In this document: piece after piece, positions 400 through 60,551 of the stretch
How the letters are laid out: each line of letters starts with the position of its first letter
How positions within the stretch are numbered: the stretch's first letter is position 1
NCBI RefSeq assembly: GCF_001447785.1
Contig: NW_015174995.1
Coordinates: forward strand, 1 to 61,001
Length of the DNA: 61,001 nt
Direction: 5' to 3'
DNA from: Gekko japonicus
Lineage: Eukaryota
Position numbers and translations under genes: made by a program
The notes under the pieces: model-generated
Databases searched by the model: none
Told to the model about the DNA's origin: nothing
Seen by the model: the letters and a program-made list of their open reading frames with translations, nothing else

Positions 400-435
400 A
401 CTCAGGAGCAACTATAGGGGCAGCGAGTTCTGCAG
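400..435 (+). CDS. 36-nt microexon DSGATIGAASSA
   Basis: Pyrimidine tract + ttag| ... GCAG|gtaagg; phase 1-1. Confidence 0.75.
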
Positions 436-3400
436 GTAAGGAGAAACTTTGGCTTCATAGTACTGTAAAGTTTGAAAGCATTGTCATCTTCATGAGACAC
501 ATTCATCTTCGTTCTTTTTTTCAGAAACCACCACACCAACTGGAGAACATTCAGGTATGAAGACATACAACCATCGTGCCTACTCTTTGGTTTCTCTGTT
601 CGACAATATTCCTGAAGTGAAGATTTGTTTATTCTTGAGAGTGGTTTTTCATAGAAGGAGGGAGGGAAGGAGGGAGGGTGGGAGGGAGGTTATGTGTATT
701 TGTAGCTCACTGCCCTACTCAAAATTACATTCAAAAGCAAGGTTCAGAAAACCTTATTAGTTTTTTTTTCTATTCTTTTAATTTTTTGCTATATTTTTAC
801 ATGTTTTATCCAGTTATAAACCCTTAACCATCTATTATTCTGTATTTTTTGGTCTTTAGTCTGAAGTATTAAACTCAAATTGTTCAATTGTCCTTTCTTA
901 ATAGGGAAAGTGTTCCAACCCTTTTATCATTCTAGTTTCTCTTTTCTGCACTTTTTCCAGTGCTATAATATCCTTTTTGAGGTGTGGTGACCAGAATTGG
1001 TCACAGTATTCCAAATGAGTTTGCAACATCAGTTTATACAGGGGTAGGGGTCATTTCGTAGAAAAAGAGGTCCATTAACGCATTAGCATAACTCATTAGC
1101 ATAACTTATTTGCATCTGCCATACCCCCAAACATGGGTCAGAAGGCAACACCCACTGCTCAGGCTCCACTGGACTGTTTTGGATTGCTAGCTATTGGAGG
1201 GGGAATGTGTAGATCTGTCCTCACAGAGGAGGGAGAGCATGTACCTGAATAAAACTTGGTCTTAAAGGTGCCACTGGACTGTTTTGGACCAGGGGACCAG
1301 GGGGGGGCTCTGCAACTTACCTGGCTTCCTCTTACTCTGACTGAAGGGCTGCTGGGAGCAGTGGGTAGGGCTATTACATGTGCCCACCCCCTGGGCTCTT
1401 TACTGCTGGAGCTCCGCTCCTGTGTGCTCCTACAGGAAATGACCCCTGTACAGGGTCATTATGATACTGGCTGAGTTGCTTTCAATACCCTTCCTAATAG
1501 TTCTGAGCATAGCGTTGGCCTTTTTTTATTTCAGTCGCACACTGTCTGGACATTTTCTGTGAGTTACCTACTACAACTCCAAGATCTCTCTCTTGGTCAG
1601 TCTCTGCCAGTTCAGACCCCATCAATGTGTATTTGTAGTTAGGATTTCTGGCCCCAATGTGCATCACTTTGCACTTGGCCACATTGAACCCCATTTGCCA
1701 TGTTGATGCCCACTCCCGGTCAGACTCCCGGTCAAATTACTCTCAGCAACACTCTCTTTGGCAGTGATATGCTTATTGAGATATATGCATGATCCAGAAC
1801 ATCATTCATGTTAGAACTGGTGATTTTGGCACACAGATGCTTAATAGAGATAATTCAAACCGAGCCCTCTCCCCTTCCCACTTGCACATGTCACAGTCAC
1901 CCTGCCTAGTGTTGCCATCTCAGTCAAATGGAAAATATATGGGTTTGTTTATCTACTTCCTAACCTGGCACAAAAAGCTTCAAGGCCACCTTTCCCTGGG
2001 AAAGGGAAAGGAGGTACATCTTGCAAGAAAAGTTATGGCTCCTAAGAGCAAAAAGTTCCCACTCATTTATCACACTCACCCACCTCCCCTCCCCGTAGGA
2101 ATTCCCTCCCCCCAGTAACTATGACAACCTGAGCGAGCAAAGCTATGCAAGGTTTGACACTCGCCCATCCTCAACAGATCCCTTTGGAATGCCTCACAAT
2201 CCTCCCTGGTTTTCACTACCCTGAACAGTTTCATGCCATCTGCACATTTAGCCACTTCACTGCTTACTCCCAACTCCAAATCATTAATGAATAAAAGCAT
2301 CAGACCCAGTTCTGAGCCCTGCAGTACCCCACTGCTTACCACCCTCCACTGAGAAAATTGCCCATTTATACTCACTCTCTGTTTCCTATTAATTAGCCAG
2401 TTTTTGATCCACAAGAGGACTTGTCCTTTTATTCCATGACTATTGAGCTTACTTAGGAGCCTTTGATGAGGAACTTCATCAAAAGCTTTCTGGAAGTCAA
2501 GGTAATCAACATCTATTGGGTCCCCCTTGTCCACATGTTTGTTCACCTCCTCAAAGAACATTGACAGATTAGTGAGACAAGATCGTCCCTTACAGAACCC
2601 ATGCTGAGTCTGCCTCAATAGTTTTTGTTCATCAATGTGCCTACCACCAACATAACCCGGTATTGATGTCAGACTGACTGGCCTGTAATTTCCTGGATCT
2701 CCTCTGGAACCCTTTGTAAAGATGGGAGTGACATTAGCTACCTTCCAGTCCTGGAGGCAGATTTTAAGGAAAGATTACATATTTTTGTCAGGAGATCCAC
2801 AAGTTCACAATTGAGTTCTTTCAGAACTCTTGGATGTATGCCATCTGGGCCTGGTGATTTATCAGTTTTTAAGTTACCTATCAGTCATAGGACCTTCTCT
2901 CTCATCACCTCAATTTGACTCAGGTCTTTCAACACCCCTCCCAAAATCAGCGGTTCTGGAGTGGGCAAACACTTCTCATCTTCCACAGTGAAGACAGAGG
3001 CAAGAAATGCATTCAGCTTCTCAGCCATTTCCCTATCATCCTTCAGTACTCCTTTTACCCCTTGGTCATCCAAGGGCCCTGCTGCTTCCCTGGCTGGTTT
3101 CCTGCTTCTCATGTATTTGAAGAAAGTTTTATTGTTGGTCTTTATGTTTTTTGTGTTATGCTCCTCATATTCCCTTCTTGCCTGCTTGATCACAAACTTG
3201 CATTTTATTTGCCACAGCCTGTGTTCCCTTTTATCAACCTCACTGAGACTAGCTTCCCACTGCTTAAAGGAATCCTTCTTACCTTTTACAGCTTCCAGAA
3301 TTGCCTCTTCCCTGGTAGTTTCTGTGACCATCTGCTCCACAGCACAGTTATTGAGAGTGTCTAGACACTCAATCTCTCTTTCCCGACTTGAACACATATT

Positions 3401-6400
3401 GACCCAATCAATGTGTGGGCAGCACCTATTATGACGCAGTTATTTTCATCTAGCCACTATCTTTAATTCATTCATCATTTTATAATCCTCCTCTCTCTTT
3501 TGATCTGGTGGGCGATAACAAACTCCCAGTGTTAAGCTACTTTTTGGGTCCACTATTTCAAACCAAAGCATTTCCAGAAGCAAGTCCAATTCTTTTACCT
3601 TCTCAATCTTACTGGACTGCATACAGAGCCACCCCACAATGTTTCCCCTCCATCCTTCCAATGTAATCAGGAATCACCATATCCCATTGATTTTCCTCAT
3701 CCCACCAAGTGTCTGAAGTACCCACAATGTCTATTTCCCCCTCCCCAACACCAAGCATCCCAACTCCTCAATTTTACCATGGAGACTCCTAGGATTTGTA
3801 TATAAACATCTACAATTTCCCATGCATATTAGGCCCACAACCTTCCTCCTGCTGCCTCGAGACCTTGCCAGGCAGTCCATATCATTAGCCACAGTCCCAG
3901 TGGACAATACTAATACATTTCCCTGTAGAAAACTAACACCTTTGAGATGACCCATCGCAAACCAGAGACTTTTCATCTCCTGTCGGCTTTCCCCCAATAT
4001 TCAGTTTAAAAACTGCTCTGTCACCTTTTTTATTTTAAACTGTGGCAGGACCTTTTGGAATTCAATTGGACATCAGGCATATCTTCCTATTATCAACTGC
4101 CTTTTACAGTAATTGGGCTACTTTCGGGGGGGAAATCTCCTTCCCACAATGTTAAATTGTAGAATATTGCAGAAATCATTTCAAATGCCTGAAAAAAATT
4201 CTGGAGGCAGGTTGTAGGGGCTTTTTTTGGAGGAGTTATTTATCACAATTTTTCACTTTCTATCATTCTCCCCCCCCCCCCCCAGACACAGGAGCAGCTA
4301 CAGGGACACCCACATCAGCAGGTAAGCAGAAGTTTTGGGCCCATATTACCGTCATGGTTGAACCCATTATCATTTTCATCATGCTCTTTCATCTTCCTTC
4401 TTTTTTCAGAAACCACCACACCAGCTGGAGAGCATTCAGGTATGAAGCCTTTTCCAATATATCCATGGTGTCTACTCCTTGGACAGTCTTCAAAAATGTT
4501 CTGGATCTCTGGAAGTATAGAAGGATGAATGGGTGGACGAATTGAGGGAAAACGCTAGCTTGAAGGATGAATCGCTGGATGGATTACAGATGAATAGATA
4601 GGTAGACTGATGCCCCATCGAAAAGGCTCTCACAGTTAGCTTAGGTTCCAGAGAGCTGTTCAAGAAGTTGGAGAACTCATGATTGAGGCCACAAGCTCAT
4701 GAAATATCACCACGGGAGGAGAATTGCTGATTCCCTGATTCTCTTCCCACTTCATCAGCAGTGGCCATCAGCTTCTATGAACTTGTATCAGATGGAAAAC
4801 TGCACAGCTCAGATGCATAAATTCCCAGGGTGTCCAACTGGATGGAGGACATATTGGAACTCTCATGCCTATCAGACATATCTTCCTCTTACTGGTTCTA
4901 GTTTAATGAAGGTGCTGGGAACCCAATCTCTTTTAGAGTATTTTAACAACTGAAGAGTGTTTTCTTTTGGTTTTGTCACTGAGGATCCTTCAGTCTTTCT
5001 TTCCTGCTACATTTGACTCCTTGTATTAGTTTCTCTGAGAACCAGGCATAATTCCTGGGGCACAAAGGACCTTTGGGGGCCACAGAAGAAGATCTAGCTG
5101 AGCTGAAGTTTTGGAAACTGAGGTAGTTGGAATTCCAGCCTCACATTTAATTGCCTTGGATTGATATATATAATTAGGGAGAAGGGGGCAGATCTTGGAA
5201 TTATTGAAAACTCTAGTAGGGAAAATGCCATATGATCTTAAAATATGTCTTTGCAGCATTAGTAATGTAGGAATCTTCTTGGACTTGAAAGAAAGTAAAA
5301 CCCTCTGAGTTTGTGGCATATTATTAAGGTGTTCAATCCTCTTTAAGTCAATAAAGAGAGGGTAAAGATCTAGCTTGAAAGCAATATAATTTCCATCATT
5401 CACCCTCTTCTTTTGGTGGGGGGCAGAAACCACCACACCAACCAGAAAACAATCTGGTAAGAAGCTGTTTTACCACTTCCATGAAGTCAACACTTTGGGA
5501 TCACTTGCAAAATGTAAGGGATGAAGGGATGCATGGATGAATGGATCAGTAGCCTGGTACCCCAGCCAAAAAGGGACTCAAGGATAGGGTTCAGGAAAGC
5601 AGCACAAGATGTTGTTTCAACCCGTGATTGAGCTCAGGAGGCCCAAGAACTGGCACCAACAGAAGGGACTTGACCATTCCTTGTTAGCCGAATTGCTCTT
5701 TAGGAGAGGCAATTGGAACAGTTTAATAATCAGGATTCAGGTCTGTGTATACGCAGGATGGGCTATGCCGGTACGTTTCAATTAAGAGACTAAACAGAAG
5801 TAAAACAAAACTTTCTTTACTAAATATATAATTCAATCACACAAGAATAAAAACCACACAGGCATACAAGGACTAAGAAAAACAAGTTAGATATCACAGC
5901 ACAGTTGCATGAGCAGGAATATCGTTGGTGGGGTATATTTACCTACGTCGTGGCTCAGCTCCGAAAACTTCCAGCTGAAGGGAGGGCAGAAGGGGAGGAA
6001 AACGGGGTAGAAAACACGTGAATCCAGACCAGCCGGGAACACGTGGATTGACCTTAGCTGCAGACTAAGGCAAAGCGGTTATCGGGAGTTTGGTATAGCA
6101 AGTGGGACAAAAGAGGTTCAAGCAGACATAGAGGGGTTGTTGGTATGAAGAAGGGTGACCTCTTGGCTCTGTGCACGATGTTTTAAGGTCTCTGCTGCGA
6201 GGGGAGGGGGTGGGCTCAAATGGATTACCAGGTAGCCCGACCCTAAAGGTCAGTGATTGGCTATGATATCAATATTCAATCTATCGATTAACTAAAGGGA
6301 GGTGTCTGGGCGGAGGCAGGAGGTACGTGCCGGGTCACCAAGTAGCGCTGACGTGGATGTTGCTATGTGTAATGGAATTCTATTGTTGGTCTGGCAAGGG

Positions 6401-9400
6401 AGGACTTCTGATGTTAAGCTTGTCAGGTGGAGACACTCGGTCTGGGCTGGCTAATGAGTTTCTGTGTTTGCGATCAACCTTCATGTTTGCATACATGATG
6501 AGCTTAACGACTCTGGGGGCCCCACTGGCTAGATGTTGATCATCCTATGCAGCTGGCATCGTCTTGGCTTGCCCCCTGGTTGAACTCTACGTTCCACAGT
6601 CTCTTCACTAACCCGTTCTGTATCAAGCTTATATTCACAAGGCATAGTCCATAAAATAGTCCAAAATGGATGCTTATGGTAACATCCTTGCTATCGTTTC
6701 CTGTGGTTGAAATGAGGCCTTCAATTTCTACGAAGCTGTATCAGACAGAAAGAAAGAGGAAATACACATGAGATCATAGGCTGTCCAAGCTGATGATGTC
6801 TCTGTGGGAACTCCTTTGAATACATGACCTATTTTCCTCATCATTACTGCTTTTCAGTCGAATCGACCAGATCTGAACCTACACAATTTGTGATGGTTTT
6901 AAATTTCTGAAGAGTGGAAAAAATCTCAATGTACGAAACCATGTTAGGGATGTGGGGGAAGGATATTCCCATCACAGTTTCTGCTTCCTGTTACTTTCTT
7001 GTCTTTTCCTGGTTTGAGCACCAGGCATAGCTTCTGGGGAACCCATTTCAGTGGGTAAGGGGACATTTTTGGTTACTTGTTAATGTCAAGCTCATAAGCC
7101 TTGCCATTTTCTTTATGCACCTTCTTTTTGTTTCTGTTTGCCAGAAACACCCACAGCAATCGCTGGACCATCGGGTAAGGAGCTCTTTCCCACCACATCC
7201 ATGAAGTGAACATTTGGTTACATTTGATAGTAGCTATTGTTAGAAGGACGGATGGATGAATGGCAGAACTGAAGAAGGGAGGGAGGAAGAGATGGAGGGA
7301 GGGATGAAAGATATGTGTATTTGTACCCCACCACTCCACTTAAAGAGATTCAAAAGCAAGGTTCAGAAAACGGGTACAACCAGTTGGCCAGTTCCTGATT
7401 GAGGTCAGCAGACTCATATTGGACCATGACAGGGGACTATTCCTTACCCTCTGTTCACTGTAGACCAAAAGATGCCATTTACAAATAAGGCTTACCAGAT
7501 TGTGAAAGACTCAGTTGATACATAGAATGTCATAGGGTGTCCGAACTGTGGCAGGACCTCTGGAAACTCTATTGGACATCATCAGGCATATCTTCCTATT
7601 CACAGTAATTGGGCCTTTCACAGTAATTGGGCTGTCTTGGGGGGGGATCTCATTCCAGTGATGTTAAATTGTAGAAGATAGCAGAAATCATTTAAAATGT
7701 CTGAAAATGAATTTGAAGGCAGGTTGCAGGGGCTTTTTTTGGAGGCGTTATCGATCATAATTTTTTGCTTTCTATTATTTGTTTTTTCCTCCTTAGACCC
7801 AGGAGCAGCTACAGGAACACCCACGTCAGCAGGTAGAGAAAGGTTTTGGCCCCATATTGCTGTCAAGGTTGAAAGCATTGTCATTTTCATCATACTCTTT
7901 CATCTTCCTTCTTTTTTCAGAAACCACCACACCAACTGGAGAACATTCAGGTATGAAGCCTTTTTCAATACATTCATGGTGTCTACTCCTTGGACACGCT
8001 TCAAAAATGTTCTGGATCCCTGAAGTGCACAAGGATGGATGGGTACATGAATGGAAGAATGGAAAGAAGGAAGGGTAGACTGAAGGATGAATGGATGGAT
8101 GTATTATAGATGAATCGATTGGAAGCCTGATGCCCTACCCGCGAAGGCTGTCATGGTTAGCTTAGGTTCTGGAGAGCTGTACAAGAAGTTGGAGAACTTG
8201 TGATTGACATCATGAGCTCATGAAATCTCAGCATGGGAGGGGAATTTCTCATTCCCTGCTTTGCTTCCCACTGCTTCAGCAGAGGTCTTCATCTTCTACA
8301 AACTCATATCTGATGGAGAAATATACAGCTCAGACACATAAATTTCTTGGTTGGATGGAGGTCACGTAACTCTCTTGGCTATCAGACATTCCTTTCTTTC
8401 CATTCCTGCAAAAAAATTCCTGCTTCTAGTTTAATGAAACTGCTGGGAACCCAATGTCTTTTTGACTATTTCAACAGCTGAAGAGTGAAAAAACAGGATT
8501 CCAAATGCCTCAAAACCACCTATTTTCTGTTGGTTTTGTCACTGAGGATCCTTCAGACTTTTTTTTTCATACTTCCTCTGACTTCTTGAATCCTAAGCCA
8601 AAAAAGGGGAAAGAATAAGGTTCAGGAACACTGGACAAGGTGTTGTTTAATCCATGATTTTGCTCAGGAGGCTAATGAACTGGATCTATGGGATGGGAAT
8701 CGCCCCCATTCATTGCCCTCTGTTCCCAGTGGTTCAAAAGAGGCCTTCAACTTCTATGAACTTATATCAGACTGAAAGAAAGAGCTAATACACATTAGGT
8801 CATAGGCTGTCAAAGCTGATGATGTTCCTGTGGGAAATTTATTGGATAACATACCTATGTGCCTCATCTTTCCTGCTTTTCACTTGAATTAAGCTCATTT
8901 GAAACCACAGCTTTTGTGATGATTTTTCATTGCTGAAGAATACAAAATATATCTAAATGTATAAAACCATGGCATTTATGCAGGGGGGAGTATATTTCCA
9001 TCTCACTTTCTGCTTTTTCTTACTCTTTTTCTTACTCCTCTCCTCGTGTGAGTACCAGGCATAGTTCCTGGGTTACCAATTTCAGTGGGTTAGGGGAAGT
9101 TTTGATCACATATATACGTTCAACTTGATAGCCTTGTTTTTTTTTCATTATGCACTTTCTTCTTTCTCTTTGCCAGAAACAAACACAGCAATTGCTGAAC
9201 CTTCTGGTAAGAAGCTCTTTTCTACCACATCCATTTAATGGACATGTGGTTATGTTTGATAGTAGTTTTTGATGGAAGGATGGATGGATGACAGGATGGA
9301 GGGATGGACAAAGGATATGTGTATTTATAGCCCTCTGTCTTGTTTATCATTTGTAATATTTATTGATGAAAGTATGGATAGATAGATGCACCTTTGGACT

Positions 9401-42400: not shown

Positions 42401-45400
42401 GTGTGCAGAATATCCAGCAGAACACAGTGCCACTGGCACAGCAAGCTTAAAAGGACTGATTTCAAAGCACAGAGTAACAACAAGTCCAAGTTGGTGTGTG
42501 TGTAAATTTTGCAAGCTCTGTGCAAGAAAATGGAAAGGGAACACAAAGGAAGGAGGGCAAAGGGGGAAAAAACCTCTTGAAACTGGCAAGACTAGTTTGA
42601 AACTGACAAGAGCAGTGGGGAAGCCCATAGAAACCCTAAGACACAGAGATAAAAAAGAAAAGGAAAATACAATCCCCAGGAACCTGCAATGCTGGCTTCC
42701 AATCATCTTGGAAAATATTAAATATATCCAGCATTTTCCAGATTTTTTTCCTGGTTTTTCGAAAAATCCCAGTGTCTTTGAGAAGCTGAAATATACCCCA
42801 AAATACCAATAAGGTATTCTTGGGGTATATTTTCGGCTCAGGTGTATCCAAATTCACACCCCATGTCAGGATTAAGTTTCAGTTCATTAGTCTGCATCCA
42901 CTCCAAAACTGCCACCAGACACCAGTTCACGTTTTTTACAACTTCCCTGCAATCGGCTGGAAGAGCGAGATAGAACTAAACATCATCTGCATATTGGTGA
43001 CAACCCAGCCCAGATCTCCACATGACCTCACCCATCAGTTTCATTTAGATGTTAATGAGCATAGGGCACAAGATAGAACCTTGCAGGATCCCACAGGACA
43101 AAAGCCAAGGGGCTGAACAGCAGTTCCCCCTCTTCTGAAATTTACCCTCTACATAGTACCATAGCCCCACAGAACAGCACCTCCCAATCCCAGCCCAGAA
43201 AGGCAGTCCAGAAGGATATCATGATTGACAGTATTGGACAGATCCAGGATAATCAATGGAGTTGCAGTTCTCTGTCCATCTCAGTGTGCAGGTCACCAAC
43301 CAGGGCAAACAAGATTGTTTCAATACCATAAAACCAGATTGGAAAGGATCTAACAATTCTCTTCAAGGAGCTTGAAGCTGTCCAGCCATTTTGTTACGTG
43401 CAGCTTTATATATACAATTCACTACTCAGTTTCTTTCTTATGATAAAGTTTCATATAGGACATCAGATATAATTATTTTGGTACAATAGGAAAACAAAGG
43501 ATGTGGTTGTGTTCCTACAGCCATATGAATCACAAATTCACAAAATAATCCCTTAAAAGGAGGGGTCTAATGAAGCAAAATATGTGGGAGGGGAAGATTG
43601 CTGTACTGACTTCAGTAGCTTGGGTTCCTTGAATGCAAAGTCTGCAAGTACAGCGGAAATACTGAAGCTGATTTATCCCTCAGAAATACCCATGATCACT
43701 TCTCCAGGAGCCCAAGCTAGTCTACTGTTGTTTGAACTAATAAGGCAGGTCCTATTATTGAGCAAAGAGAAAAGCTCCCTCCAGTGGAAGACTTGGATTC
43801 TATTGTTAGACAGAAAATATTCCATTATTTACTTTACTGAATTTCTATCTAGGAAAATGGGGGTGTAATTTGGATTTTCAGCCCCAATTGCCAAAATGTC
43901 TTGGGTTGTCAGTGTCAGGGGTCATTTCGCAGAAAAAGAGGTGCAGGAGCTCATTAACATAACTCATTAGCATAGCTTATTTGCATATGCCACACCCCCT
44001 GACGTCACCGGAAGTGTGTCAGAAGGCAACACCCACCGCTCAGGCTCCACTGGACTGTTGGCAGAACAACCTCATCTACAGCAGTCAAGCAGCGTGGGAG
44101 CATCTGCCCAGTGCTGCACTGCTAACTCTCTAATCTGCCCATATGGCTTTTCTTTTGCACCCCCCCCAGCCCATGAGGCCTTGCAGCGAGGATACACCAA
44201 CTCTGAGCTTACCAGCTGCTGTCCTTTGTACAGTTTATGTCTCCTGTACCTGGCATTACATTATATGACACAGATGGCCCAGCCTGACAAAGTGACATTT
44301 ATGTCAGATACGGCCCTCGTCCAGAAGGATATCATGATTGACAGTATTGAAAGTCACTGACAGATCCAGGATAATCAATGGAGTTGCATAGTGATGGGTG
44401 AACTTCCCTCTAGGCTCGTGGGTGAATAAATTACAAAGCAAAAAAGGAGCACATTAGGGGAAAGGGTTTTGGTTCTTGAATGTACTCTTTTGTCTTGCAT
44501 TTGCTTGCTTTGGTGTATGAGTACCCTGCCCTCTTACCCAAAAGCAGCTGCTCGTGCATGGGCCGCTCAAATCCCCTCTTTGGTGGCTGTGATAGTTTCC
44601 TTCTTCTTTTCCTTGGAAGCAGCAGTAGTAGCACCTCTTTCTTTCTCTTTTCCATTCCCCTCCACAGTAGGTAAGGTCTCTGGGTGATATGTGTGTTAGG
44701 ACATGATGTTTTCCCACAGTGTTTGACTATTGCAAGGCATCATAAGAAAATGACACACCTTACCTATCCTATTGCTTGAAAGGGCAACCTAATAGCGGTT
44801 CAAGCATCTGGGTGTGGGGAAAGGACAGATAAGACAAATAGGAAATAAAGGCATAGTGCTGCCACTCCAGAAGGGGAGAGAGAAGATAGGGATAGCTAGC
44901 ACTAGATCGTGAACAAAGTCAGGAACTAAAATTGCATTCATGTTTAGTTGTGTGACACTGTTGCTTCTTTTCATCAATCAGTGATCTCGTGTTCTGAAAG
45001 ATACATGTATGTACGTATCAGCAAACATGACCTCCAGGCTTTGGGCTACAATCCATGGGATTTGCATCTGAATCATAATTCCTGTAGATGTAAAACTACT
45101 CCAGGCTACGTTTTCTGCAACATACCACTCCATGGTTGTGGCACAGTAAAACAAGTAAGAAAAATGGTGTTGGGGCGGTTATTAAATATAAACTGTATTC
45201 TGGTTTCTTTTGAAACAAAAATACATTCTGGTTCTATTTTATATGGATGGGGAAAGTATTTCTTTTATTCACTGTGTGAGCTGGTAAAGACATAAGGCTC
45301 CTTCTTCATTGTGGGTAAAAAAAGTTGTATGCTGACTTAGGGAAATGTATGCTTCTTAATTCAATACCACCCTACTCTCCTCTGGAGTTCCTTACACCCT

Positions 45401-48400
45401 CCTGCCTTACTTACAGTGTAGAGATACATCAGCACTGAACAGGGTTTTCTGGTTAGGAGGGATGCAAGTTAGGGTATCCATGGTTAAAGTCAGCATTGGC
45501 ACTTACCCTAAAAATAGTCCATACAAGAAATAATTTGTTGTTGAGGGGTATGAGGAGGGAGTGTGAGTTCCTGATACTGGCTTCTGATTTCATGACCCCA
45601 CTTAAGAGTGCTCACAGCAAACAGACTGAATATATTTAGAGTGATTATAATAGGAAATACATACAATTCAAAGATTACAATGACTGAGGAATGGCAAATT
45701 CATATTTAAATAGGTGTCAAAGATTTCAGTGATTAAGGAATAAGCAATCATAACAAATTGCAGACAGGAATCTAGACATGGTCCTGTTTTGAGGCATTCT
45801 TCTTCAGTATACAAATACCAAATAGACAAAAATGTTGTTCTGCCCTCTTATAAAAACGAATGTATTCACACTGCAATAAAAGACAAAGGATATTAAAGCT
45901 ATACATTATTTTTGATTTTTTTCAACTATAATGAAGAACTCTACAGAGACTTCTTTAACACAGCTGCAGTTTGAAAATATCCTTGTCATTTAATAATGCT
46001 GACCCTTTAGTGTGGATACAAAATTAAACATTCCTTATGTACACGCAGCCTGAAGGGAACTACAAAAATTCACTTCATTCAAGTTTTAAAGGGCCTTATC
46101 TGCCTTGTCCGGAGATAGCAGTCAACAATTGCTGAGAAACTTCATTCATAGTCAGACTTCTAGGTCAGGAATCCCTGTAAAGCATAGTGAACTATAATAT
46201 AAACATACTAAAACAGTAAAGTTCAGACATACTCAGGGAGTACGGAGATTTCTAACAGCAGCTGGTGAAATAAAACTCTCGTTACAGACTGCAAAGTGTA
46301 GTACTCAGGAATCCCAGGCAATAGGTATGTTAGGACATGATGAGTGATTCAGGGATTAGAATGTGAATTCTTTAGTCATCTGTATAGGGTTTATTTCTTG
46401 TTACATATTCCTCTGCAATTATTGCAATGATCATTCCTAAAATATTCACAATTATTGCAATAATCATTCTTAATATATTCACAATGTTTTTTCTGTTCAT
46501 CAACACCGCAGTCCATCTTTATCTGTTTTTTTTCCACACTTGCACATCTGAATATGCTTTGCATTTTTCAGAATTACAGATGTACGTGTAATCATCTTTG
46601 TATTTCCAGTTGCTTTTCTTCTGGTGGGAACAATCATACATCTTAAAATATTTCGGGATATTTAGGTTAAAGAAATCATTGAACTCTAAACTCCATAAGA
46701 CCCCCTTTAATAACTATCATTCTGAAATATTAGTGGATCTTTAAATGGTCAAGTATACTGTACAAGGTATTTGGCAACTTATATATGATACTGACATGGT
46801 ATCCTTGTTTTCTGTCCTTCAGCAGAAAAATTATGGCACTATAGTATATTCCAATGTAATCAAGACATCTTCCTTGGGCTACACCTTTATGAGGAAAAAG
46901 CATTTCAACAAGGGAGTGATAACTCTATTTCATGTTACGTGTGAAATGAATGAAAGCAAACTTCCAAGACGACGTTTTGTTACCAAAAATGATATTACTA
47001 CAACACAGCATGGCAAATACAACGTTAATATTTCACTCTATGACTCATTATCTTTCAAAACTCCAATTTATAATCAATATTTCATGCATCGAAACCAGGA
47101 CGCATTCCTCCAAGCCTCTCTCCACAGTTCTGATCCAAAGTTGGTCTTATTTATGGACACATGTGTGGCATCTCCAGACATCAACTTCAAAACCTTGACC
47201 TATGACTTGATCAGGAGTGGGTGAGTGTATTTTACATGACTAAAATGAGAGGTATTTTGCTGTCTTTCTGGTTCACACAGCCAAGGAGTGAACAATTCAT
47301 TCTTTCCTTGTGCATTGCACAGCTATGACAAGGTTTTGCTCACAAAATGTCAAATAAACATGGAGTTGGGTTACTTTATTGCATCATTTGCCTCATCCAC
47401 CCTTCAAATGAGATTACAAGACAAAACCTTGGGTTTAACTAGTTTATATAGTTAACTGATCTACATCACAATGTTAAGCATGCTAACTGCTATTGTGTTT
47501 AAATGGGCAGGCTATGCTAGGCAGCGTGACTGTGGCTAACTTTGATAGACAGACTCACCCTGAGCCCAAACACAAACTTGGTCTGCATTGGCTGCACACA
47601 ATGTTCCAAGAGGTGCCCAGCCTCAGCCCCCTACCCTGATATACCACACGGCTTTTACCATGTTCAAAGAAGATGGTGCTCAGCACTGAAAGTGCTCCTT
47701 CTCAGCCACACCCCACCACACAGCCAATGATGCATTGTTTCAGATACACCCTCCATCACTTTTGATTTCTCAGGGTGCTTGCCAACCATCCCTGTCTAAC
47801 CAGAACAGCCCACCCTATCCTTGCCACACTAGTTATGACCTAAAGAGTCAACCCTCAGGTTTATTTAACCAACCGTAACCCTGACATCCAGAGAAGCTGC
47901 AAAATATTCCTGCTCAGCCCCAAAAGGCAACCAGTCAATTCCTTGATGTCCATAGGGAGGGTGGGAGGGTCAGCAGCCAGGAGCAAAAGCCTGCTTGGGG
48001 AAGGCACAGCCAGGATATATGCTGGACAGCTGCACCTCCCCATTGACTGCTATTTGAATGGATCACCCAGTAATGCTTTATGCCTTATTTGAACTCCAGT
48101 GGGGCCAAGGCAAACAGATCCTCGGCTTTAACATCAGGAATACCACAATTCCTAACAAAGCTCTAATATTTCTAGGGAGAATTATGGAGACCGATTTCAC
48201 TCTCTAAAGTCAATGGGCTTAGAAGAGTGTAACTCTGTTTACGATTGCATTGCAAGTGTCTTAGGACTATCTCTTTGTCTCATCATTTAAATATCCCCAG
48301 ACAGAGGCAGGACAGTCCAATGGTATATGGATTTATATATTAATGGTCCTGGCAGATGTCCTTTTGATTATGACCAGTTTTGTGATTCTATATAACTTCC

Positions 48401-51400
48401 AAACAGGATCCCTTTGCATTCTCTAAGAACCGTATATAAAATATTCATGTGTCTGAGATCCTGTTCTCCAAGACCTTGCCACATATGATTTTTCTTCTCC
48501 TCCAACAAATGTCTCAAAATTTGCTTCTGTTGTTGTTTTGTTGCTTTCACAAACCCAAATAGGCATTCATATCACATATTTTGCATCCAATACTCAATAA
48601 TATTGATGTTCCTTTCTTTCCTTCTCCAGTTTGGGAGGTCTCCTTTAGGGCAGGTTCTCAAGATACTGGAGGACCTGCTGGTTTGATCTGGAGGGGAGAG
48701 GATTGACCAGCACTTTTGTCCTGTCTGTACTTCCCTCTGTACATCTGGGCATAAGTAGGAGCTAATTTCCTAGGCATTCCCCAGCCATCTTCAAATCAGG
48801 CATGGCAATCTGCAGATGCCCAGAATTGGTCCCTCATGTCTTGCAAACTGACCTCATTCCACATGAGTTTGGGTACTATTTTGGAGGTCTTAGCAACTGT
48901 ACTAGCCAATATATTGATGGGTGCATTGGTGATAACATTGCTGCAGCAGTTTTCAAAACAAACAATGCCAGCCACCACCAGACTGGAGACCAGCATGGGG
49001 GTTGGGGATATCTTCTGACTCACTGAGTGGCAGTCATTGTAATATCCCAGACATCCAGCATGGCCCATGATTATCAGGAACCACCTACTTTGTAACTCCA
49101 CAAGTAATGCTGCTGGTTCTCCTTCCGTACAACCTTCTTTATTTTCCATTGCATGGCTTAGATAGGAGGAGAAATAAAAACTTTGGTACACTTGCTACAT
49201 TATTTAAATGTCTACTCTTAGTAGCATAGGGAAGAAGCAGAATATTTGACATTCAAAATCAATCATTATTCCATTATGAGTTTGTTAACACAAACAAACA
49301 CGAATGGGTGGGGGCAGCTGAAATTGCGATATACATGCTGGATTCTTGTATAATGCATGTATCTAGGATTCCATATAAACACAAATGGTCTAAGCCAGAA
49401 GAGTAGAATTTTTCCTTTAATAAGTATTCTCGCCAATACACTGACTCAGTGGTACATTGCCTTGTTTATGTGATTATCTGAACTAATCTGAGACATCCTA
49501 TTCTTTTCCAGATGTGCACAAGACTCTACCTATCAGGAACTGCCTTCACCAAGCAATAATGCTGTTCGCTGGAAATTCAATACCTTGAAGTTTCTTGAGA
49601 AACACTATGCAATTTACTTGAGATGCCACCTAGCAGTATGCAAGGCTTCTGATTACTCATCCCGATGCTATCAGGGGTGCTTACCCAGAAAAATCAGGAA
49701 AGCAAGGGCACTCAACGATCATGTGGGTGTTGTTGTGGGACCTGTCCAGCTTCAGAGAGAAGACAAAAAACATGGTAAATTGTTCTTGTGATTCCTTCTC
49801 TTTCTACAGCAGTGGTCGCCAAAATATATTCAGGAGAAGTTCCAAAACATCCAAGATGATTACTCACATTTTGTTATAAAATTACATGCTGCTGTATTCA
49901 TTTTTTTCCCCCATTTTGGTCAATAAAAGCATACTACTACAGAAGTTCATTGTACAACAGAGAGAATTATATAGACCCATTCTAGTGACTGCAAAAGTCA
50001 CTAAAGGTACATGTCACAGTCCCTTCACATGCATTCTCTGTATGTGGTTTAACTACTGGCACTGGGTGCTTCCAGTGCCATCCTAAGCAGTGTTGTACTC
50101 CTTTAATCCCATTAACTTCCATAAACATAGATGATGGTAACTCTGGGGAATTTCACATTACCTGTCTTCTCCCGGTTTCAAGCCGGGAGTCTTCCGTTTC
50201 CAGATGAACCGGTACAGGGCTGCCGTTTCACACACGGCTTGCCCCTACCGGAAAGGAGCCGATTCACAAGCGGTTCGGCGTTTCACACACGCACCGCTTT
50301 GTTTCCCCACGGTTTTTTTTTTTAAAGTCCGTCTTATAGCGATATATCGATATACCAGTACTCCAATGTATTCCAATGGGATCGCTATAGCGTTATATCA
50401 ATATATCGATATAAGCCAAACGTTCAAAAAAAAAAAAAGCCCGCGCGGCCGAAAAAAGGCGGGAAAGAACCGTATCGGAACCGGGAGAGGGAACGGAAGA
50501 CTCCTCGGAAGCGGTTGACAGGTAAATCGCTTCCCTCCCGGTTCCTATATGGAACAGAGACTTTTGAGTGTGAAATGGCAGTCAGATCCCGGTAGGGAAC
50601 CGATTCTCAACCGGGTTCTGTCTGAAATGACAGACCAGCACCCGGTTGAGAATCGGTTCCCTACCGGGAGAAAGCACCTGTCTGAAATTCCCCTCTGTTT
50701 ACAATGGCACTGTTTGATCCAAAAGGGAGCTGGAAATCTGTCATTAAGAGTTTTTATTATTAGTAGTCTCACCACCTTCTTTGGAGCCATGACAAGTGAA
50801 TTATAACTCAGGCAATCGTGTGGGTCATTTGGGTCTGCATATTCTGGGGTATTTATGGAGGGACCATGATAAAACATCAATTAGAACAAACGGCTCTACA
50901 TTCTAGTATTTCAGCTGCACTTGTGTATACATTGCAGCTCTTGGATGTTAGGGAGAATTAACACATGCATATTCATCACTAGATGACTTGCAGATGAATG
51001 TGTGGCCTGTTTCCTTCCAAAGACATTCTGAGATGATGGGATAATATAAAGACTTCAGGGTGTTGATCTGAGGAGTATTAATTCATATCAGTCAATCATC
51101 CATTTATGTTATTGTCATCAAATGACAATTTCAGTGTGAACGTATCAGTGTGATATCGTCCTTGAACTAGTGATCCAAATAGCGATTACAATGCCAACAG
51201 GTATATGTGTAAATTCTAACAAATCATTCCATCCTGTCTTTTAATTTACAGAACGGAGAAAGCGTGCCATTCTCACAGAAGCTGAAGCCATCTCTCCACT
51301 TACTATTACTGCTATTAGTTTGGTAGTCATTGTTTTTGTTTTAGCTGGCATTCTTCTGAGCAGCAAATTGATTAGGAGAAAAGACCATCAGATATACTGA
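400..51400 (+). CDS. 5'-partial multi-exon gene: microexon-built mucin-like stalk + DMBT1-type ZP domain + TM (DMBT1-like ZP-mucin)
   Basis: About 28 AG/GT-bounded phase-1/phase-1 microexons with lengths divisible by 3, followed by 4 phase-compatible exons (1-0, 0-2, 2-1, 1-stop) with no internal stops. The ZP sequence closely follows DMBT1 (GCGT..Q, TIVYSN, DTCVASP, LTYDLIRSGC, YLRC..VC....SSRCYQGC, VVVGPVQLQ). Confidence 0.8.
525..554 (+). CDS. 30-nt microexon ETTTPTGEHS
   Basis: ttttttcag| ... TCAG|gtatga; 89-nt intron from its partner. Confidence 0.75.
813..4040 (-). mobile_element. Fragmented CR1 LINE ORF2 (APE endonuclease + RT), degenerate
   Basis: ORFs contain GVCYRPP, QHGFCKGRSCLTNL, YLDFQKAFD, FNVAKCKVMH and ERDLGV. 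Interrupted at 1045-1448 and about 1720-2155. Confidence 0.92.
1045..1448. mobile_element. Non-autonomous hAT-type DNA transposon nested in CR1
   Basis: TIRs taggggtcatttc / gaaatgacccctg; 8-bp TSD tacagggg / tacagggt. Confidence 0.8.
4286..4321 (+). CDS. 36-nt microexon DTGAATGTPTSA
   Basis: poly-C + cag| ... GCAG|gtaagc. Confidence 0.75.
4410..4439 (+). CDS. 30-nt microexon ETTTPAGEHS
   Basis: ttttttcag| ... TCAG|gtatga; 88-nt intron. Confidence 0.75.
5040..5075 (+). pseudogene. Dead 36-nt microexon copy (EPGIIPGA...)
   Basis: Start matches the 7019 and 9053 exons. No GT donor, and the short intron is interrupted by about 280 bp of unrelated sequence. Confidence 0.5.
5427..5456 (+). CDS. 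30-nt microexon ETTTPTRKQS
   Basis: cag| ... CTG|gtaaga. The pyrimidine tract is broken by a G run, so the acceptor is weak. Confidence 0.5.
5682..6684. mobile_element. Solo LTR (ERV-like, 4-bp TSD)
   Basis: TGTTA...TAACA termini and TSD tcct. Absent from the paralogous site near 8710. Confidence 0.8.
7019..7054 (+). CDS. 36-nt microexon APGIASGEPISV (or 30 nt from CAG at 7024)
   Basis: tttgag| or caccag| acceptor; GTGG|gtaagg. Confidence 0.6.
7145..7174 (+). CDS. 30-nt microexon ETPTAIAGPS
   Basis: tttgccag| ... TCGG|gtaagg. Confidence 0.72.
7797..7832 (+). CDS. 36-nt microexon DPGAATGTPTSA
   Basis: cctccttag| ... GCAG|gtagag. Confidence 0.7.
7921..7950 (+). CDS. 30-nt microexon ETTTPTGEHS (identical to 525-554)
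   Basis: cttttttcag| ... TCAG|gtatga. Confidence 0.75.
9053..9088 (+). CDS. 36-nt microexon VPGIVPGLPISV (or 30 nt from CAG at 9058)
   Basis: gtgag| or taccag| acceptor; weak GTGG|gttagg donor. Confidence 0.5.
9177..9206 (+). CDS. 30-nt microexon ETNTAIAEPS
   Basis: tttgccag| ... CTG|gtaaga. Confidence 0.72.
9872..9907 (+). CDS. 36-nt microexon GPAIPTLAPTSG
   Basis: cttcctccaag| ... GGAG|gtgaag. Confidence 0.65.
9996..10025 (+). CDS. 30-nt microexon ETTTVYAEPP
   Basis: ttttgccag| ... CTG|gtaaga; 88-nt intron. Confidence 0.72.
10430..11665 (-). mobile_element. 3' fragments of a non-LTR retrotransposon (ORF2 C-terminal zinc-knuckle region)
   Basis: ORF 11256..11747 EGKYKKIPFEERICPCC..LEHIIF; microsatellite tail near 10430. 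Relatives at about 24400-24820 (-) and 39060-39435 (+). Confidence 0.65.
10727..11123. mobile_element. hAT-type MITE
   Basis: cagggctattttt / aaaaagagccctg TIRs; perfect 8-bp TSD cttataag. Confidence 0.85.
11688..12066. mobile_element. CpG-rich probable PIF/Harbinger-type MITE
   Basis: Abrupt GC/CpG-rich block with imperfect inverted ends (ggccccggtcgcaca / tgtgaacggcgccc). TSD unclear. Confidence 0.45.
12350..12385 (+). CDS. 36-nt microexon EPAITSAALISP
   Basis: tcttctaag| ... CCG|gtaagt. Confidence 0.7.
12475..12504 (+). CDS. 30-nt microexon ERTPKVTEPT
   Basis: ttttaccag| ... CTG|gtacgc; 89-nt intron. Confidence 0.65.
13334..13601. mobile_element. hAT-type MITE (TAGGGyTGCCA termini)
   Basis: tagggctgccaaatc / gatttggcaacccta; TSD acatgtgt / acgtgtgt. 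Partial relative at about 41992-42240. Confidence 0.8.
15014..15910. mobile_element. LTR-like repeat; relatives at about 53416-54400 and 58808-59065
   Basis: TG...CA ends and a shared core resembling gtggaagtc(t/a)atgtggt..agagaa.cac..cagcat in three places. TSD not resolved. Confidence 0.5.
16321..16362. other. Assembly gap (N run)
   Basis: 42 N. Confidence 1.
16580..16609 (+). pseudogene. Dead 30-nt microexon (ETTKAVKKPK); donor lost and 36-nt partner missing
   Basis: The short-intron motif (gattgaaagtgttgtgattttt) and ttccag| acceptor are present, but the exon is followed by aaatga instead of gt. Confidence 0.55.
17129..17166 (+). pseudogene. 38-nt frameshifting variant of the 36-nt microexon
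   Basis: taag| ... GCTG|gtaagg splice sites intact, but 2 nt longer than its paralogs. Confidence 0.55.
17257..17286 (+). CDS. 30-nt microexon ETTTAITEHT
   Basis: ttttgttag| ... CTG|gtaaga. Confidence 0.7.
17720..17755 (+). CDS. 36-nt microexon EPHIASEESASV
   Basis: tcctattag| ... TTG|gtaagg. Confidence 0.7.
18652..20207. mobile_element. hAT-type element with an internally amplified 175-bp unit and an intervening LTR-like block (about 19140-19800)
   Basis: tagagttgcca / tggcaaccctg ends. The unit recurs at 18831, 19006, 19817, 19992 and 20168. Confidence 0.65.
21020..22290 (-). mobile_element. Stacked L2 LINE 3' fragments
   Basis: ORFs with HWLPIAYQIRFKVLVL, AHIQPVLCQLHW and RAFLALAPTWWNSLP. 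Confidence 0.85.
22382..22411 (+). pseudogene. Dead 30-nt microexon (ETIMTIRKPT), separated from its acceptor at 17841 by about 4.5 kb of inserted repeats
   Basis: The exon body and downstream unit flank (aagaagcagttttttatcacatccat) resume here. The donor is mutated to ataaga. Confidence 0.55.
23006..23041 (+). CDS. 36-nt microexon EPGIAKDESTSA
   Basis: tttctcag| ... GCTG|gtaagg. Confidence 0.72.
23122..23661 (+). pseudogene. 30-nt microexon (EKTMSIIEPT) split by a 510-bp insertion
   Basis: 23122-23132 (AAAAAACTATG) + 23643-23661 (TCCATCATAGAACCCACTG|gtaaga) sum to exactly 30 nt. ATG occurs at both insertion junctions. Confidence 0.65.
23738..24219 (-). mobile_element. CR1 RT fragment, near-identical to 2429-2938
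   Basis: ORF 23622..23927 QHGFCKGRSCLTNL...YLDFQKAFD. Confidence 0.9.
27530..27559 (+). CDS. Microexon VTVFQKPNLG (36-nt type with outer AG lost; inner CAG gives 30 nt)
   Basis: tttcaataaacag| ... GGTG|gtaagg; 86-nt intron to its partner. Confidence 0.5.
27646..27675 (+). CDS. 30-nt microexon EPPKAFSYST
   Basis: ttcttttaag| ... CTG|gtaagg. Confidence 0.6.
28330..28880 (-). mobile_element. Penelope-like element fragment (GIY-YIG C-terminal region)
   Basis: VGRHFNLPGHSIADLRVAV..QRNFQGRLQCEIAE.EFIHKF. Contains a 30-bp internal duplication. Confidence 0.8.
29505..29540 (+). CDS. 36-nt microexon DTGSVMRKLQFA
   Basis: ttttcaag| ... GCTG|gtaaga. Confidence 0.58.
29730..29759 (+). CDS. 30-nt microexon EMATIVTEFT (weak donor)
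   Basis: ttttccaag| ... CTA|gtaaaa. Confidence 0.4.
30271..30476. mobile_element. hAT-type MITE copy 1
   Basis: caatgctccctctaag / cttagagggaacactg; TSD gttgccac on both sides. Confidence 0.85.
30984..31190. mobile_element. hAT-type MITE copy 2 (same family)
   Basis: Same body as copy 1; TSD gtggttac / gtggctac. Confidence 0.85.
32184..32201 (+). CDS. 18-nt microexon (A/T)TSEET
   Basis: tttctgaatag| ... CAG|gtgagt, a consensus donor; phase 1-1. Confidence 0.6.
32776..32805 (+). CDS. 30-nt microexon EGASGPDPET
   Basis: ttcttctaacag| ... CAG|gtaaga; paralog of 38496-38525. Confidence 0.7.
33442..33486 (+). CDS. 45-nt microexon ETEVLGEDSSDLSAI
   Basis: ctttaccag| ... TAG|gtaaga; open in phase 1. 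Confidence 0.62.
   Translation, partial: KQKSWVKTLLICQQ
36154..36807. mobile_element. Solo LTR (Gypsy-like, 5-bp TSD)
   Basis: TGTCA...TGACA termini and TSD cataa. CR1 is continuous across it. Confidence 0.85.
36905..37193 (+). mobile_element. Full-length tRNA-derived squamate SINE
   Basis: A box tggtgtagtgg, B box ggtttgattcc, (TCT)n tail, flanking tcactt duplication. Confidence 0.85.
38335..38358 (+). CDS. 24-nt microexon ESSHPSSP
   Basis: tttatttacag| ... CAG|gtaata. Confidence 0.62.
38496..38525 (+). CDS. 30-nt microexon ESAGVPDLVT
   Basis: tctttctaacag| ... CAG|gtaaga. Confidence 0.7.
38713..38920 (-). mobile_element. tRNA-derived SINE
   Basis: The reverse strand starts ctgtggctcagtggtagagcatctgct. 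Confidence 0.7.
40459..40488 (+). CDS. 30-nt microexon APKTYRIPSR (last found before ZP)
   Basis: ttaacgcttacag| ... GAG|gtaaat. Confidence 0.6.
41080..41312 (+). mobile_element. Sauria-type SINE, 5'-truncated
   Basis: agtagataaataggtaccac...catgccggccacatgacc...gagatgagcac...tttacct tail. Confidence 0.75.
42870..43400 (-). mobile_element. L2-type LINE RT fragment
   Basis: The reverse strand gives QYADDV (catcatctgcatattggtg) and a QGS-like motif. Confidence 0.6.
44060..44320 (+). repeat. 261-bp near-identical copy of 41618-41878
   Basis: Direct comparison; the shared translation GASAQCCTANSLICPYGF appears in both ORFs. Confidence 0.9.
44982..45154 (+). CDS. ZP exon 1 (ZP-N): (V)ISCSERYMYVRISKHDLQALGYNPWDLHLNHNSCRCKTTPGYVFCNIPLHGCGTVKQ
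   Basis: cttttcatcaatcag| acceptor in phase 1, CAA|gtaaga donor in phase 0, 173 nt. Lies inside ORF 44948..45295 and has the ZP-N Cys pattern. Confidence 0.92.
46823..47220 (+). CDS. ZP exon 2: QKNYGTIVYSN...HVTCEM...YNVNISLY...LFMDTCVASPDINFKTLTYDLIRSG
   Basis: NAGNAG acceptor (ttcag/cag; start 46823 or 46826), GG|gtgagt donor in phase 2. Lies inside ORF 46745..47224. Confidence 0.95.
49512..49774 (+). CDS. ZP exon 3 (ZP-C end, RKIRKAR basic site, external hydrophobic patch VGVVVGPVQL)
   Basis: ttcttttccag|A TGT GCA CAA GAC completes GG|A. Donor CAT G|gtaaat. 263 nt, open. Confidence 0.95.
50145..50693. mobile_element. PIF/Harbinger-type MITE in the last intron
   Basis: TIR ggggaatttca / tgaaattcccc, 3-bp TSD tct, CpG-rich. 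Confidence 0.8.
51252..51400 (+). CDS. Terminal coding exon: (E)RRKRAILTEAEAISPLTITAISLVVIVFVLAGILLSSKLIRRKDHQIY* (furin motif, TM helix, short basic tail)
   Basis: ttaatttacag| acceptor in phase 1. About 22 hydrophobic residues followed by KLIRRK. TGA at 51398-51400. Confidence 0.88.
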
Positions 51401-52296: not shown

Positions 52297-52360
52297 NNNN
52301 NNNNNNNNNNNNNNNNNNNNNNNNNNNNNNNNNNNNNNNNNNNNNNNNNNNNNNNNNNNN
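52297..52360. other. Assembly gap (N run)
   Basis: 64 N. Confidence 1.
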
Positions 52361-59290: not shown

Positions 59291-60036
59291 CAAACTTGGA
59301 TGGTATCTTGGGGAGAGGCTTCAGCAGCTACCCTGCGAGTTTGGAGCCTCTCCCCCAAACTCCCTCCCCTCCAGCCCCCAGAATTTACCCTATGTTTTCG
59401 CCATTGACTTCAATGGCCCATAGGATATAATGGGGCCAAAACTGACATTCGGCTGGCCCTTTTTCAGGCCCAGCATTCTAGCGCAGAGTCTGAAAAAGGA
59501 GAGGAGGGGGAGGCAGCTCCGCAGGCGATTTTTCAAGCCCGGCGCTCCAGCGTGGAACCTGAAAAAGGCAGGGAGGGCAGCTCAGCAGTCCCCCCCACGG
59601 TGGTTGCAGCAGCGGCGGCCATAACTTTTTAAAGAGCCCCTAAGGAAGGCCCATAGAATTGGACCCCCTGGTCCAATGTTCTTCAAACTTGGTTGGTATC
59701 TTGGGGAGATGCTTCAGCAGCTACCCTGCAAGTTTGGAGCCTCTCCCCCAAACTCCTTCCCCTCCAGCCCCCAGAATTTACCCTATGTTTTCACCATTGA
59801 CTTCAATAGCCCATAGGATATAATGGGGCCAAAATTGACATTCGGCTGGCCCTTTTTCAGGCCTGGCATTCTAGCGCAGAGCCTGAAAAAGGAGAGGAGG
59901 GGGAGGCAGCTCTGCAGGCCATTTTTCAAGCCTGGCGCTCCAGCGCGGAACCTGAAAAAGGCAGGGCGGGCAGCTCAGCAGTCCCCCCCCCATGGTGGTT
60001 GCAGCGGCGGCCATAACTTTTTTAAGAGCCCCTAAG
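59291..60036. repeat. Tandem duplication, period 393 bp
   Basis: Near-identical ORFs start at 59430 and 59823. Confidence 0.9.
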
Positions 60037-60551
60037 GACAGCTGGAGGAGCAAGAATGACCTCTCATGCGAGAGGTGGAATTTTCCCCTATGAGTCCAAG
60101 GCCACAACTGGCTCAGGGAGGCAGGAAAACGTTTCACCCCGCCCCCCCTGCGGGCATCGCAACTGCCGCCGAGAACATCAGCAGGGCTCCCGAGCAAGCC
60201 AAGGAAAGGGAAGGTGGTGGAGCAGCTGGAGACATTGTAATGAGCACTCGAGCCCCGCCCCCAGTAGCCCTCAGGCCGGAGAACCTGGAGCAGTCTTGGG
60301 AGGTGGATTGGCAAAAAGCAAAACCAAAAGTGCAGGAACTCAAGAGAACTCCCATAATGGAGCCGGTTCCTCTTCCACAGCCCAAAATGCGACCCACAAA
60401 CCCTGAGCTTGCTTTTTCTCATTTGCGAGTCTGGCCTCCGCACTCTTTTAATGAGGCAGCCCTGAAGCTTGGGGCGGCGGGAGTTTCTTTGCACGCAGCT
60501 TGTGCGGCTGGCTGAGTGCCTCTTCTGCTTGCCCACCTCTCGCCTCCGCAC

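Follow-up and report, generated by a model that had tools for sequence, protein, structure and literature searches.

What kind of protein is encoded by a gene in which a zona pellucida (ZP) module of the DMBT1 type is preceded by tens of kilobases holding microexons and no recognisable globular domain? DMBT1 is a pattern-recognition scaffold of mucosal defence, and its binding activity resides in its SRCR domains. We examined this question at a locus of the gecko Gekko japonicus, in a stretch of 61,001 nucleotides (positions 1 to 61,001 of the forward strand of contig NW_015174995.1, NCBI RefSeq assembly GCF_001447785.1; hereafter the window). Our analysis makes it likely that a DMBT1 paralogue, gecko-only as sampled, has its 3′ part in the window; a predicted spacer of microexons leads into its ZP module, and the 45 kb before that module are free of SRCR and CUB exons.

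The ZP module itself is complete. It is encoded by four exons at 44982-51400 on the plus strand and includes a cleavage site, a hydrophobic patch and a membrane anchor. Pfam recognises both of its halves in the open reading frames of these exons (ZP-N, E=1.2e-09; ZP-C, E=3.4e-09), and alignment to relatives, together with a reading of the splice sites, gave four exons with canonical AG/GT sites and consistent phases. Exon 1 (44982-45154), placed by Pfam and by its splice sites, encodes the first half of ZP-N; it is entered in phase 1, is left in phase 0, and contains neither a start codon nor a signal peptide. Exon 2 (Z2; 46823-47220, phase 0 to 2) runs from the remainder of ZP-N through the linker to the middle of ZP-C. 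Exon 3 (49512-49774, phase 2 to 1) completes ZP-C with four cysteines and also encodes RKIRKAR, a basic cleavage motif, together with the hydrophobic patch. The last coding exon (51252-51400, entered in phase 1) adds a second basic motif, RRKR, and the transmembrane helix, behind which a short basic tail runs to the stop codon (51398-51400). The order downstream of ZP-C is thus RKIRKAR, hydrophobic patch, RRKR, transmembrane helix, basic tail. In alignments to relatives the canonical ZP cysteines are all conserved, and so are the basic cleavage site, the hydrophobic patch and the C-terminal anchor of exons 3 and 4. The nearest solved structures, betaglycan (E=5.2e-7) and uromodulin (E=2.8e-4), are both distant relatives.

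Upon close examination of ZP-N, we noticed an additional pair of cysteines at residues 36 and 45 of exon 1, arranged as a C-x-C motif with a further cysteine nine residues on. Among 130 aligned relatives only three sequences carry this pair, namely the window, Paroedura picta and Sphaerodactylus townsendi. This clade-specific pair may form an extra disulfide.

A first-pass annotation of the locus, made from the letters alone, had called the ZP sequence strongly DMBT1-like. The database comparisons agree: every named best match is DMBT1 or DMBT1-like, with E values down to 2.7e-53. An exhaustive search with exon Z2 returned 149 matches, and all of those looked up by name were DMBT1, DMBT1-like or CUZD1, most of the 149 being not named. 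We then placed the module in a careful maximum-likelihood tree of 57 sequences and 130 columns built on exon Z2; the searches, like the tree, used single exons. The window, Paroedura, Sphaerodactylus XP_048361639.1 and one Logan fragment form a clade with full support (100/100), which sits within a squamate-only clade of 14 sequences (97/94). The other members of that larger clade are the SRCR-bearing gecko DMBT1 proteins (Eublepharis and Sphaerodactylus isoform X3; 100/99) and DMBT1-like proteins of lacertids, Varanus, snakes and agamids. Mammalian DMBT1 falls in the same major clade as the window, and Naja CUZD1 in the other (99/95), so that the phylogeny that had been proposed as a check places the ZP module in the DMBT1 clade and apart from Naja CUZD1. 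Among the 149 matches, most of them not named, no protein stands out with a build like that of UMOD or GP2, that is, long and devoid of SRCR and CUB. Several relatives (Phrynocephalus, Calonectris, Protopterus and a Rattus isoform) display two ZP modules, which suggests that these models are fused tandem genes.

Sphaerodactylus carries both paralogues, and the window gene must therefore stem from a duplication in geckos or earlier in squamates. By alignment and tree, its orthologues are Paroedura picta LOC143842725 and Sphaerodactylus townsendi XP_048361639, with 62-72% identity to the window over the ZP exons. Word searches across the length ranges 174-555 and 536-1706 aa returned no other orthologue above 47% identity. 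The annotation had considered the build possibly lineage-specific, and the sampled clade is in keeping with this, consisting of gecko sequences plus the one fragment, whose species is unassigned. The closest full-length model, Paroedura XP_077204003.1 (‘uncharacterized protein LOC143842725’, 975 aa), carries its ZP-N and ZP-C between residues 659 and 891, behind 658 aa of repeats; it contains no other Pfam domain, and hence no SRCR or CUB. No signal peptide is obvious in its first ~170 residues, one part of which is an A-type exon (see below) read in another frame, with 82% identity to the frame-0 reading of 4289-4321; the 5′ end of this model is probably wrong. The Sphaerodactylus model comprises 317 aa and starts inside ZP-N. 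Both models thus look incomplete at the 5′ end, and their repeat sequences and copy numbers are species-specific; what they share with the window are the extra cysteines and, in Paroedura, spacer exons that are colinear with those described here. We found no paper describing this gene in reptiles, the Paroedura and Sphaerodactylus orthologues included.

What precedes the ZP module? The absence of SRCR and CUB exons from the 45 kb before it, claimed by the first-pass annotation, held up under five methods applied to the assembled sequence of the window on both strands. A motif scan of 644 stop-free stretches of at least 45 aa in six frames detected neither domain. When 156 relatives, most of them with SRCR and/or CUB, were compared with the window by tblastn at E≤0.01, the matches fell on the ZP exons only, bar a minus-strand reverse-transcriptase match and one weak CUB-like match. 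Profile HMMs derived from these relatives (186 instances of SRCR, 178 of CUB), run with filters off over 2672 stop-free pieces, yielded best E values of 0.42 and 1.3, respectively. When translation was carried through stops, each written as X, the same profiles returned nothing above noise, the opposite strand scoring equally. Finally, Pfam found no SRCR or CUB in 32 of the 33 plus-strand stop-free stretches of at least 97 aa 5′ of the ZP module (all but 43971-44357). Of the domains proposed at the outset for a six-frame search, the analysis thus recovers ZP-N and ZP-C within the window, and neither SRCR nor CUB.

Two weak candidates came out of these scans. A 19-aa SRCR-like stretch at 32384-32443 (+) accounts for the E value of 0.42, and a CUB-like stretch at 42859-42936 (+) for that of 1.3; the latter also matched one relative by tblastn at E=3e-4, a value before correction for 156 queries. 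We rejected both as non-significant: read-through did not extend them, the minus strand scored equally, and Pfam did not recognise them. Between the array and the ZP module, and on the gene strand as they are, both could be relics of decayed exons or chance matches.

In place of globular domains, the 45 kb before the ZP module hold only small phase-1 exons rich in S, T, P, G and A, much as the annotation's ‘only microexons’ had it. We predict about 26 such exons 5′ of the ZP module, among them about ten duplicated pairs of a 36-nt exon (A) and a 30-nt exon (B). Self-comparison and repeat finding show that the repeat unit recurs about ten times between 400 and 23100, and our description of it is based on an alignment of eleven copies. 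The 36+30 nt pairs of the first-pass annotation are thereby substantiated, as some ten units with AG/GT sites, phase 1 throughout, and an A-B intron of 86-90 nt.

All units lie on the plus strand, and the window opens inside the array. The first unit (400-554) consists of A at 400-435 (36 nt) and B at 525-554 (30 nt) separated by an intron of 89 nt, and the second (4286-4439) of A at 4286-4321 and B at 4410-4439. A lone B-type microexon of 30 nt follows at 5427-5456; it belongs to repeat family D6, is open and bounded by AG/GTAAG, and has a poor upstream pyrimidine tract. Complete units then recur at 7019-7174 (A 7019-7054, B 7145-7174), 7797-7950 (A 7797-7832, B 7921-7950), 9053-9206 (A 9053-9088, with the weak donor GTTAGG; B 9177-9206), 9872-10025 (A 9872-9907, B 9996-10025) and 12350-12504 (A 12350-12385, B 12475-12504). 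The next two copies are defective. The unit at ~16500 lacks an A exon, and its B-type exon (16580-16609) has lost its donor (GG/AAAT) and is probably a dead copy. In the unit at 17129-17286, B (17257-17286) is preceded by an A-like exon of 38 nt (17129-17166), which would break the frame if spliced in and is probably skipped or dead. Several donors are weak.

Toward the 3′ end of the array the A exon precedes longer partners. At 17720-17904, A (17720-17755) is followed by a 63-nt exon (17842-17904), both colinear with Paroedura residues ~355-383 at 55% identity over 20 aa, and at 23006-23247, A (23006-23041) is followed by a 126-nt exon (23122-23247), colinear with Paroedura 469-514 (tblastn E=0.02). 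Beyond these lie a 30-nt microexon at 27646-27675 with a good AG/GTAAG, which resembles a Paroedura segment by eye; a 36-nt and a 30-nt exon at 29505-29540 and 29730-29759, corresponding to Paroedura 519-535 at 59% identity, the second with a weak donor (GTAAAA); two copies of a second microexon type, 30 nt each, at 32776-32805 and 38496-38525, whose surroundings are 85% identical; and a 45-nt exon at 33442-33486, which together with the second microexon type resembles Paroedura 558-650 by eye only. All of these lie on the plus strand, and those at 27646-27675, 29730-29759, 32776-32805, 38496-38525 and 33442-33486 are candidates drawn from splice-site scanning and by-eye resemblance. In the window, splice-site scanning and tblastn of the Paroedura protein identified with confidence no exon that joins ZP exon 1.

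Are these short segments coding? The A exons are exactly 36 nt in nine of ten copies and eight B exons are exactly 30 nt; the tabulated A and B exons have AG/GT sites and are open in the same phase 1, the degenerate B exon at 16580-16609 being the one without a donor. Nine of the ten A exons and all eight intact B exons are free of indels, and their flanks are full of them. By contrast, the exons are not the best conserved parts of the unit: identity between copies is 57-60% in the exons and 65% in the A-B intron, reaching 77% in the A donor flank and 74% in the B acceptor tract. We therefore ruled out the notion that the exons are better conserved than the introns, and the coding argument rests on the preserved length, frame and splice sites together with the match to Paroedura. 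This is consistent with spacer exons whose length, frame and splicing are under constraint and whose sequence is not. The frame of the array is fixed independently of these comparisons, because ZP exon 1 needs one preceding base and the predicted upstream exons are all multiples of three.

The match to Paroedura is specific to residue order. Against a shuffle that keeps composition, five of 13 microexon peptides resemble the Paroedura spacer significantly (z 3.5-4.5): the B exons of the units at 400-554 (z=3.8) and 9053-9206 (z=4.2), the A peptide at 7019-7174 (z=3.6), the A exon at 17720-17755 (z=4.5), and the pair at 23006-23247 (z=3.5). In addition, tblastn of the Paroedura protein on the window, at low stringency and with noise, recovered colinear exons at 17842-17904, 23122-23247 and 29505-29540. 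The order-specific matches imply that the microexons are coding sequence common to both species. We also weighed the reading in which the 36+30 nt units are non-coding and exon-like by chance, the product being a short ZP-only protein that starts near 44982. The Sphaerodactylus model, beginning within ZP-N, would suit such a product, as would the between-copy conservation of exons that does not exceed that of the intron. Yet ZP exon 1 is entered in phase 1 and offers neither start codon nor signal peptide, the indels that crowd the flanks spare the exons, and orthologous peptides occur within the Paroedura protein. We regard this reading as highly improbable.

Read in phase 1, the microexons encode peptides rich in S, T, P, G and A, such as a 12-mer starting DTGAATG and a 10-mer starting ETTTPTG. 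The 26 predicted exons amount to ~300 residues, with 28.5% S+T and 41% S+T+P. Classical mucin PTS domains have a higher S+T content, and 28.5% lies at the low end for a mucin domain.

The surroundings of the exons are marked by assembly gaps and mobile elements. The window has ~42% GC and contains three short runs of N, at 16321-16362, 52297-52360 and 60868-60889. The first lies in intron-like sequence beside the repeat unit that lacks an A exon, and homology to the unit resumes at ~16500, ~140 nt to the right of the gap; the absent A exon may lie in the unread gap sequence. This gap cannot shift the frame, since the predicted exons are all symmetric, multiples of three and in phase 1. A reverse-transcriptase-like open frame at 2175-2504 (-) matches the retroelement part of one database protein. 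The element at 2429-2938 has a second copy, 92% identical, 21 kb away at 23738-24219, and with the reverse-transcriptase-like frame it represents intronic transposon insertions. Within the gene, between the units at 17720 and 23006, two blocks of ~175-bp tandem repeats (85-91% identity) occupy 18756-20179. At 38856-38921 (-), Rfam has a tRNA match that barely passes its threshold (31.1 bits; cutoff 29) and probably marks a tRNA-derived SINE, not a gene. Just 5′ of ZP exon 1, 41618-41878 and 44060-44320 are 261-nt copies that lie 2.4 kb apart and are 98% identical, which points to young repeat insertions in this last intron-like stretch. On the 3′ side of the gene, 55845-57505 (+) holds open frames of 112 and 271 aa that match no Pfam family and have weak atlas leads only (CCDC117-like, score 0.88); an adjacent gene could have an exon here. 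Beyond them, 59290-60867 is occupied by tandem repeats of 393 bp and 171 bp.

The array has its blemishes, and a decaying duplicate, a pseudogene or a barely expressed gene whose array is eroding, would account for the one frame-breaking A exon, the one lost B donor and the several weak donors, as well as for the dense transposon insertions at 38-45 kb. The ZP end tells against decay: all four of its exons are open with canonical sites, the canonical cysteines and the extra pair are conserved in three species at the 62-72% identity given above, and Paroedura has an mRNA-based model. Decay thus seems to us very improbable, and we continue with a coding spacer that leads into an intact ZP module.

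Where did the spacer come from? In DMBT1, SIDs are S/T-rich motifs of 20-24 aa between SRCR domains, and separate Thr-rich and Ser-Thr-Pro-rich regions lie near the CUB domains (PMC3100851). The first-pass annotation had taken the 36+30 nt pairs for SID exon pairs amplified after the SRCR exon was lost. One A+B pair does encode 22 S/T-rich residues and is SID-sized, with no SRCR domains in the window for it to separate. The homology, however, did not materialise. We compared the 13 microexon peptides with 39 distinct linkers between SRCR domains. Their source was a set of ten SRCR-rich relatives treated as mammal-type DMBT1, three of them named (rat, cheetah and a lungfish), and at this peptide level we found no order-specific similarity between the unit and the SIDs (all z≤0.6), a result that speaks against SID remnants. 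In the Eublepharis and turtle relatives examined, moreover, inter-SRCR linkers measure only 7-10 aa. Similarity to the spacers of squamate and turtle DMBT1 reached significance in one of 13 exons (z=3.5), too little to support a claim.

The closest architectural parallels are found in gecko paralogues of the same squamate clade, Sphaerodactylus townsendi DMBT1 isoform X3 (XP_048361586.1) and Eublepharis macularius DMBT1-like (XP_054838246.1). Isoform X3 is ordered as signal peptide, CUB, ~450 aa of T-rich repeats of 10-11 aa, SRCR and ZP, and many of its repeats begin with E, like the B exons of the window; Eublepharis has ~125 aa of T-rich repeats at its N-terminus. Lacertid and agamid relatives likewise have T-rich spacers, here between CUB domains. 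These paralogues differ from the window gene in that they have kept SRCR domains (one in X3, seven in Eublepharis), with an SRCR directly before ZP, and X3 also has its N-terminal CUB. The order assumed in the first-pass annotation, CUB directly before ZP, therefore stands for mammals (PMC3100851) and fails for gecko DMBT1, where SRCR occupies that place. Because an SRCR-bearing gecko DMBT1 already has a T-rich array, the repeat spacer appears to be a family trait. An existing squamate DMBT1 trait that was expanded in the window gene would be more economical than SID remnants, though low-complexity protein sequence alone does not settle the choice between the two origins.

How far does the absence of SRCR and CUB extend beyond the window? 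That the gene is ‘SID-only’ is unproven, because the window begins in mid-array, the Paroedura 5′ end looks mis-framed, and a gap interrupts one unit. One possibility, to which we give slightly less than even weight, is that the whole gene is devoid of SRCR and CUB, a gecko duplicate of DMBT1 reduced to a tethered, cleavable and polymerising protein of spacer plus ZP with an extra disulfide. An ordinary multi-domain DMBT1 paralogue, with a signal peptide and CUB and/or SRCR exons 5′ of the window or in the gap, seems to us similarly tenable and likewise a little short of even. It is favoured by the start of the window inside the repeat array and by the unreliable 5′ end of the Paroedura model, with its out-of-frame A exon and no obvious signal peptide. 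Relatives in which SRCR or CUB is N-terminal to a long S/T-rich stretch also exist, as modelled by Sphaerodactylus X3 and by a turtle relative with three SRCR domains, a 337-aa S/T-rich linker and ZP. On the other side, the 975-aa Paroedura model contains neither domain, the search across 536-1706 aa returned no long orthologue that carries them, and 45 kb without a globular-domain exon is unlike any relative examined.

The 3′ part of the paralogue suggests a likely mechanism. In uromodulin and other ZP proteins, a membrane anchor holds the precursor, cleavage at a basic site releases a hydrophobic patch, and the modules assemble into filaments through ZP-N and ZP-C. In the window gene, at least ten tandem 36+30 nt units and about eight further small exons, all predicted, would encode a ~300-residue spacer rich in S, T, P, G and A, which is probably O-glycosylated. 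This spacer is predicted to be spliced straight onto the complete DMBT1-type ZP module. By analogy, the precursor would be held in the membrane by its C-terminal helix until cleavage at the basic site after ZP-C frees the blocking hydrophobic patch, upon which the ZP modules could polymerise into filaments through ZP-N and ZP-C. Such filaments would display the glycosylated spacer, and any domains contributed by 5′ exons, at an epithelial surface or in a secretion.

Comparison with known systems shows which parts of this build are familiar. With DMBT1 (gp340, salivary agglutinin, hensin, muclin), the window gene shares its place in the DMBT1 clade, with 43-50% ZP identity to reptile and bird DMBT1-like proteins, as well as spacers rich in S and T, the basic cleavage motif that follows ZP-C and, as in other squamate members, an anchor at the C-terminus. 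It differs in having neither tandem group B SRCR domains nor CUB in the 45 kb before ZP, in a spacer far longer than a SID of 20-24 aa (PMC3100851), and in the extra cysteine pair of ZP-N. Uromodulin shares ZP-N and ZP-C, the cleavage site, the hydrophobic patch and the logic of the anchor, and with its solved filament structures provides the model for a ZP polymer; it is distant, being absent from the 149 matches, and has N-terminal EGF and D8C domains instead of a repeat spacer. CUZD1 combines two CUB domains with a ZP of the CUZD1 clade, whereas the window lacks CUB and its ZP lies apart from that of Naja CUZD1. The nearest evolutionary parallel is ‘mucinisation’, in which mucins arise when a non-mucin scaffold gains PTS repeats (Sci Adv 2022, PMC9417175). 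The window gene resembles it in a non-mucin scaffold that has gained tandem S/T/P-rich repeats of variable copy number (PMC9417175), and departs from it in that its unit consists of two microexons with introns of their own instead of a repeat within one exon, and in its S+T content of 28.5%.

Judged from sequence comparison, the passage from a microexon spacer to a ZP module is an unusual build, and the paralogue apparently belongs to the gecko lineage. What is at stake is moderate: neither the gene family nor the ZP mechanism nor the T-rich spacers of DMBT1 are new, and the orthologues already sit in databases as unnamed models. Annotation pipelines handle the locus poorly, having cut one orthologue down to its ZP module and given another an out-of-frame N-terminus. 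If the whole gene does lack SRCR and CUB, it would represent a lineage-specific, ZP-anchored mucin whose length could vary by gain, loss and skipping of two-exon units. It would then be a natural example of mucin-like repeats made from symmetric microexons rather than from repeats within an exon, and a paralogue reduced to the polymerising ZP end, with the rest replaced by a glycosylated spacer that can expand exon by exon, would show how a defence receptor can turn into a structural polymer of a surface or secretion.
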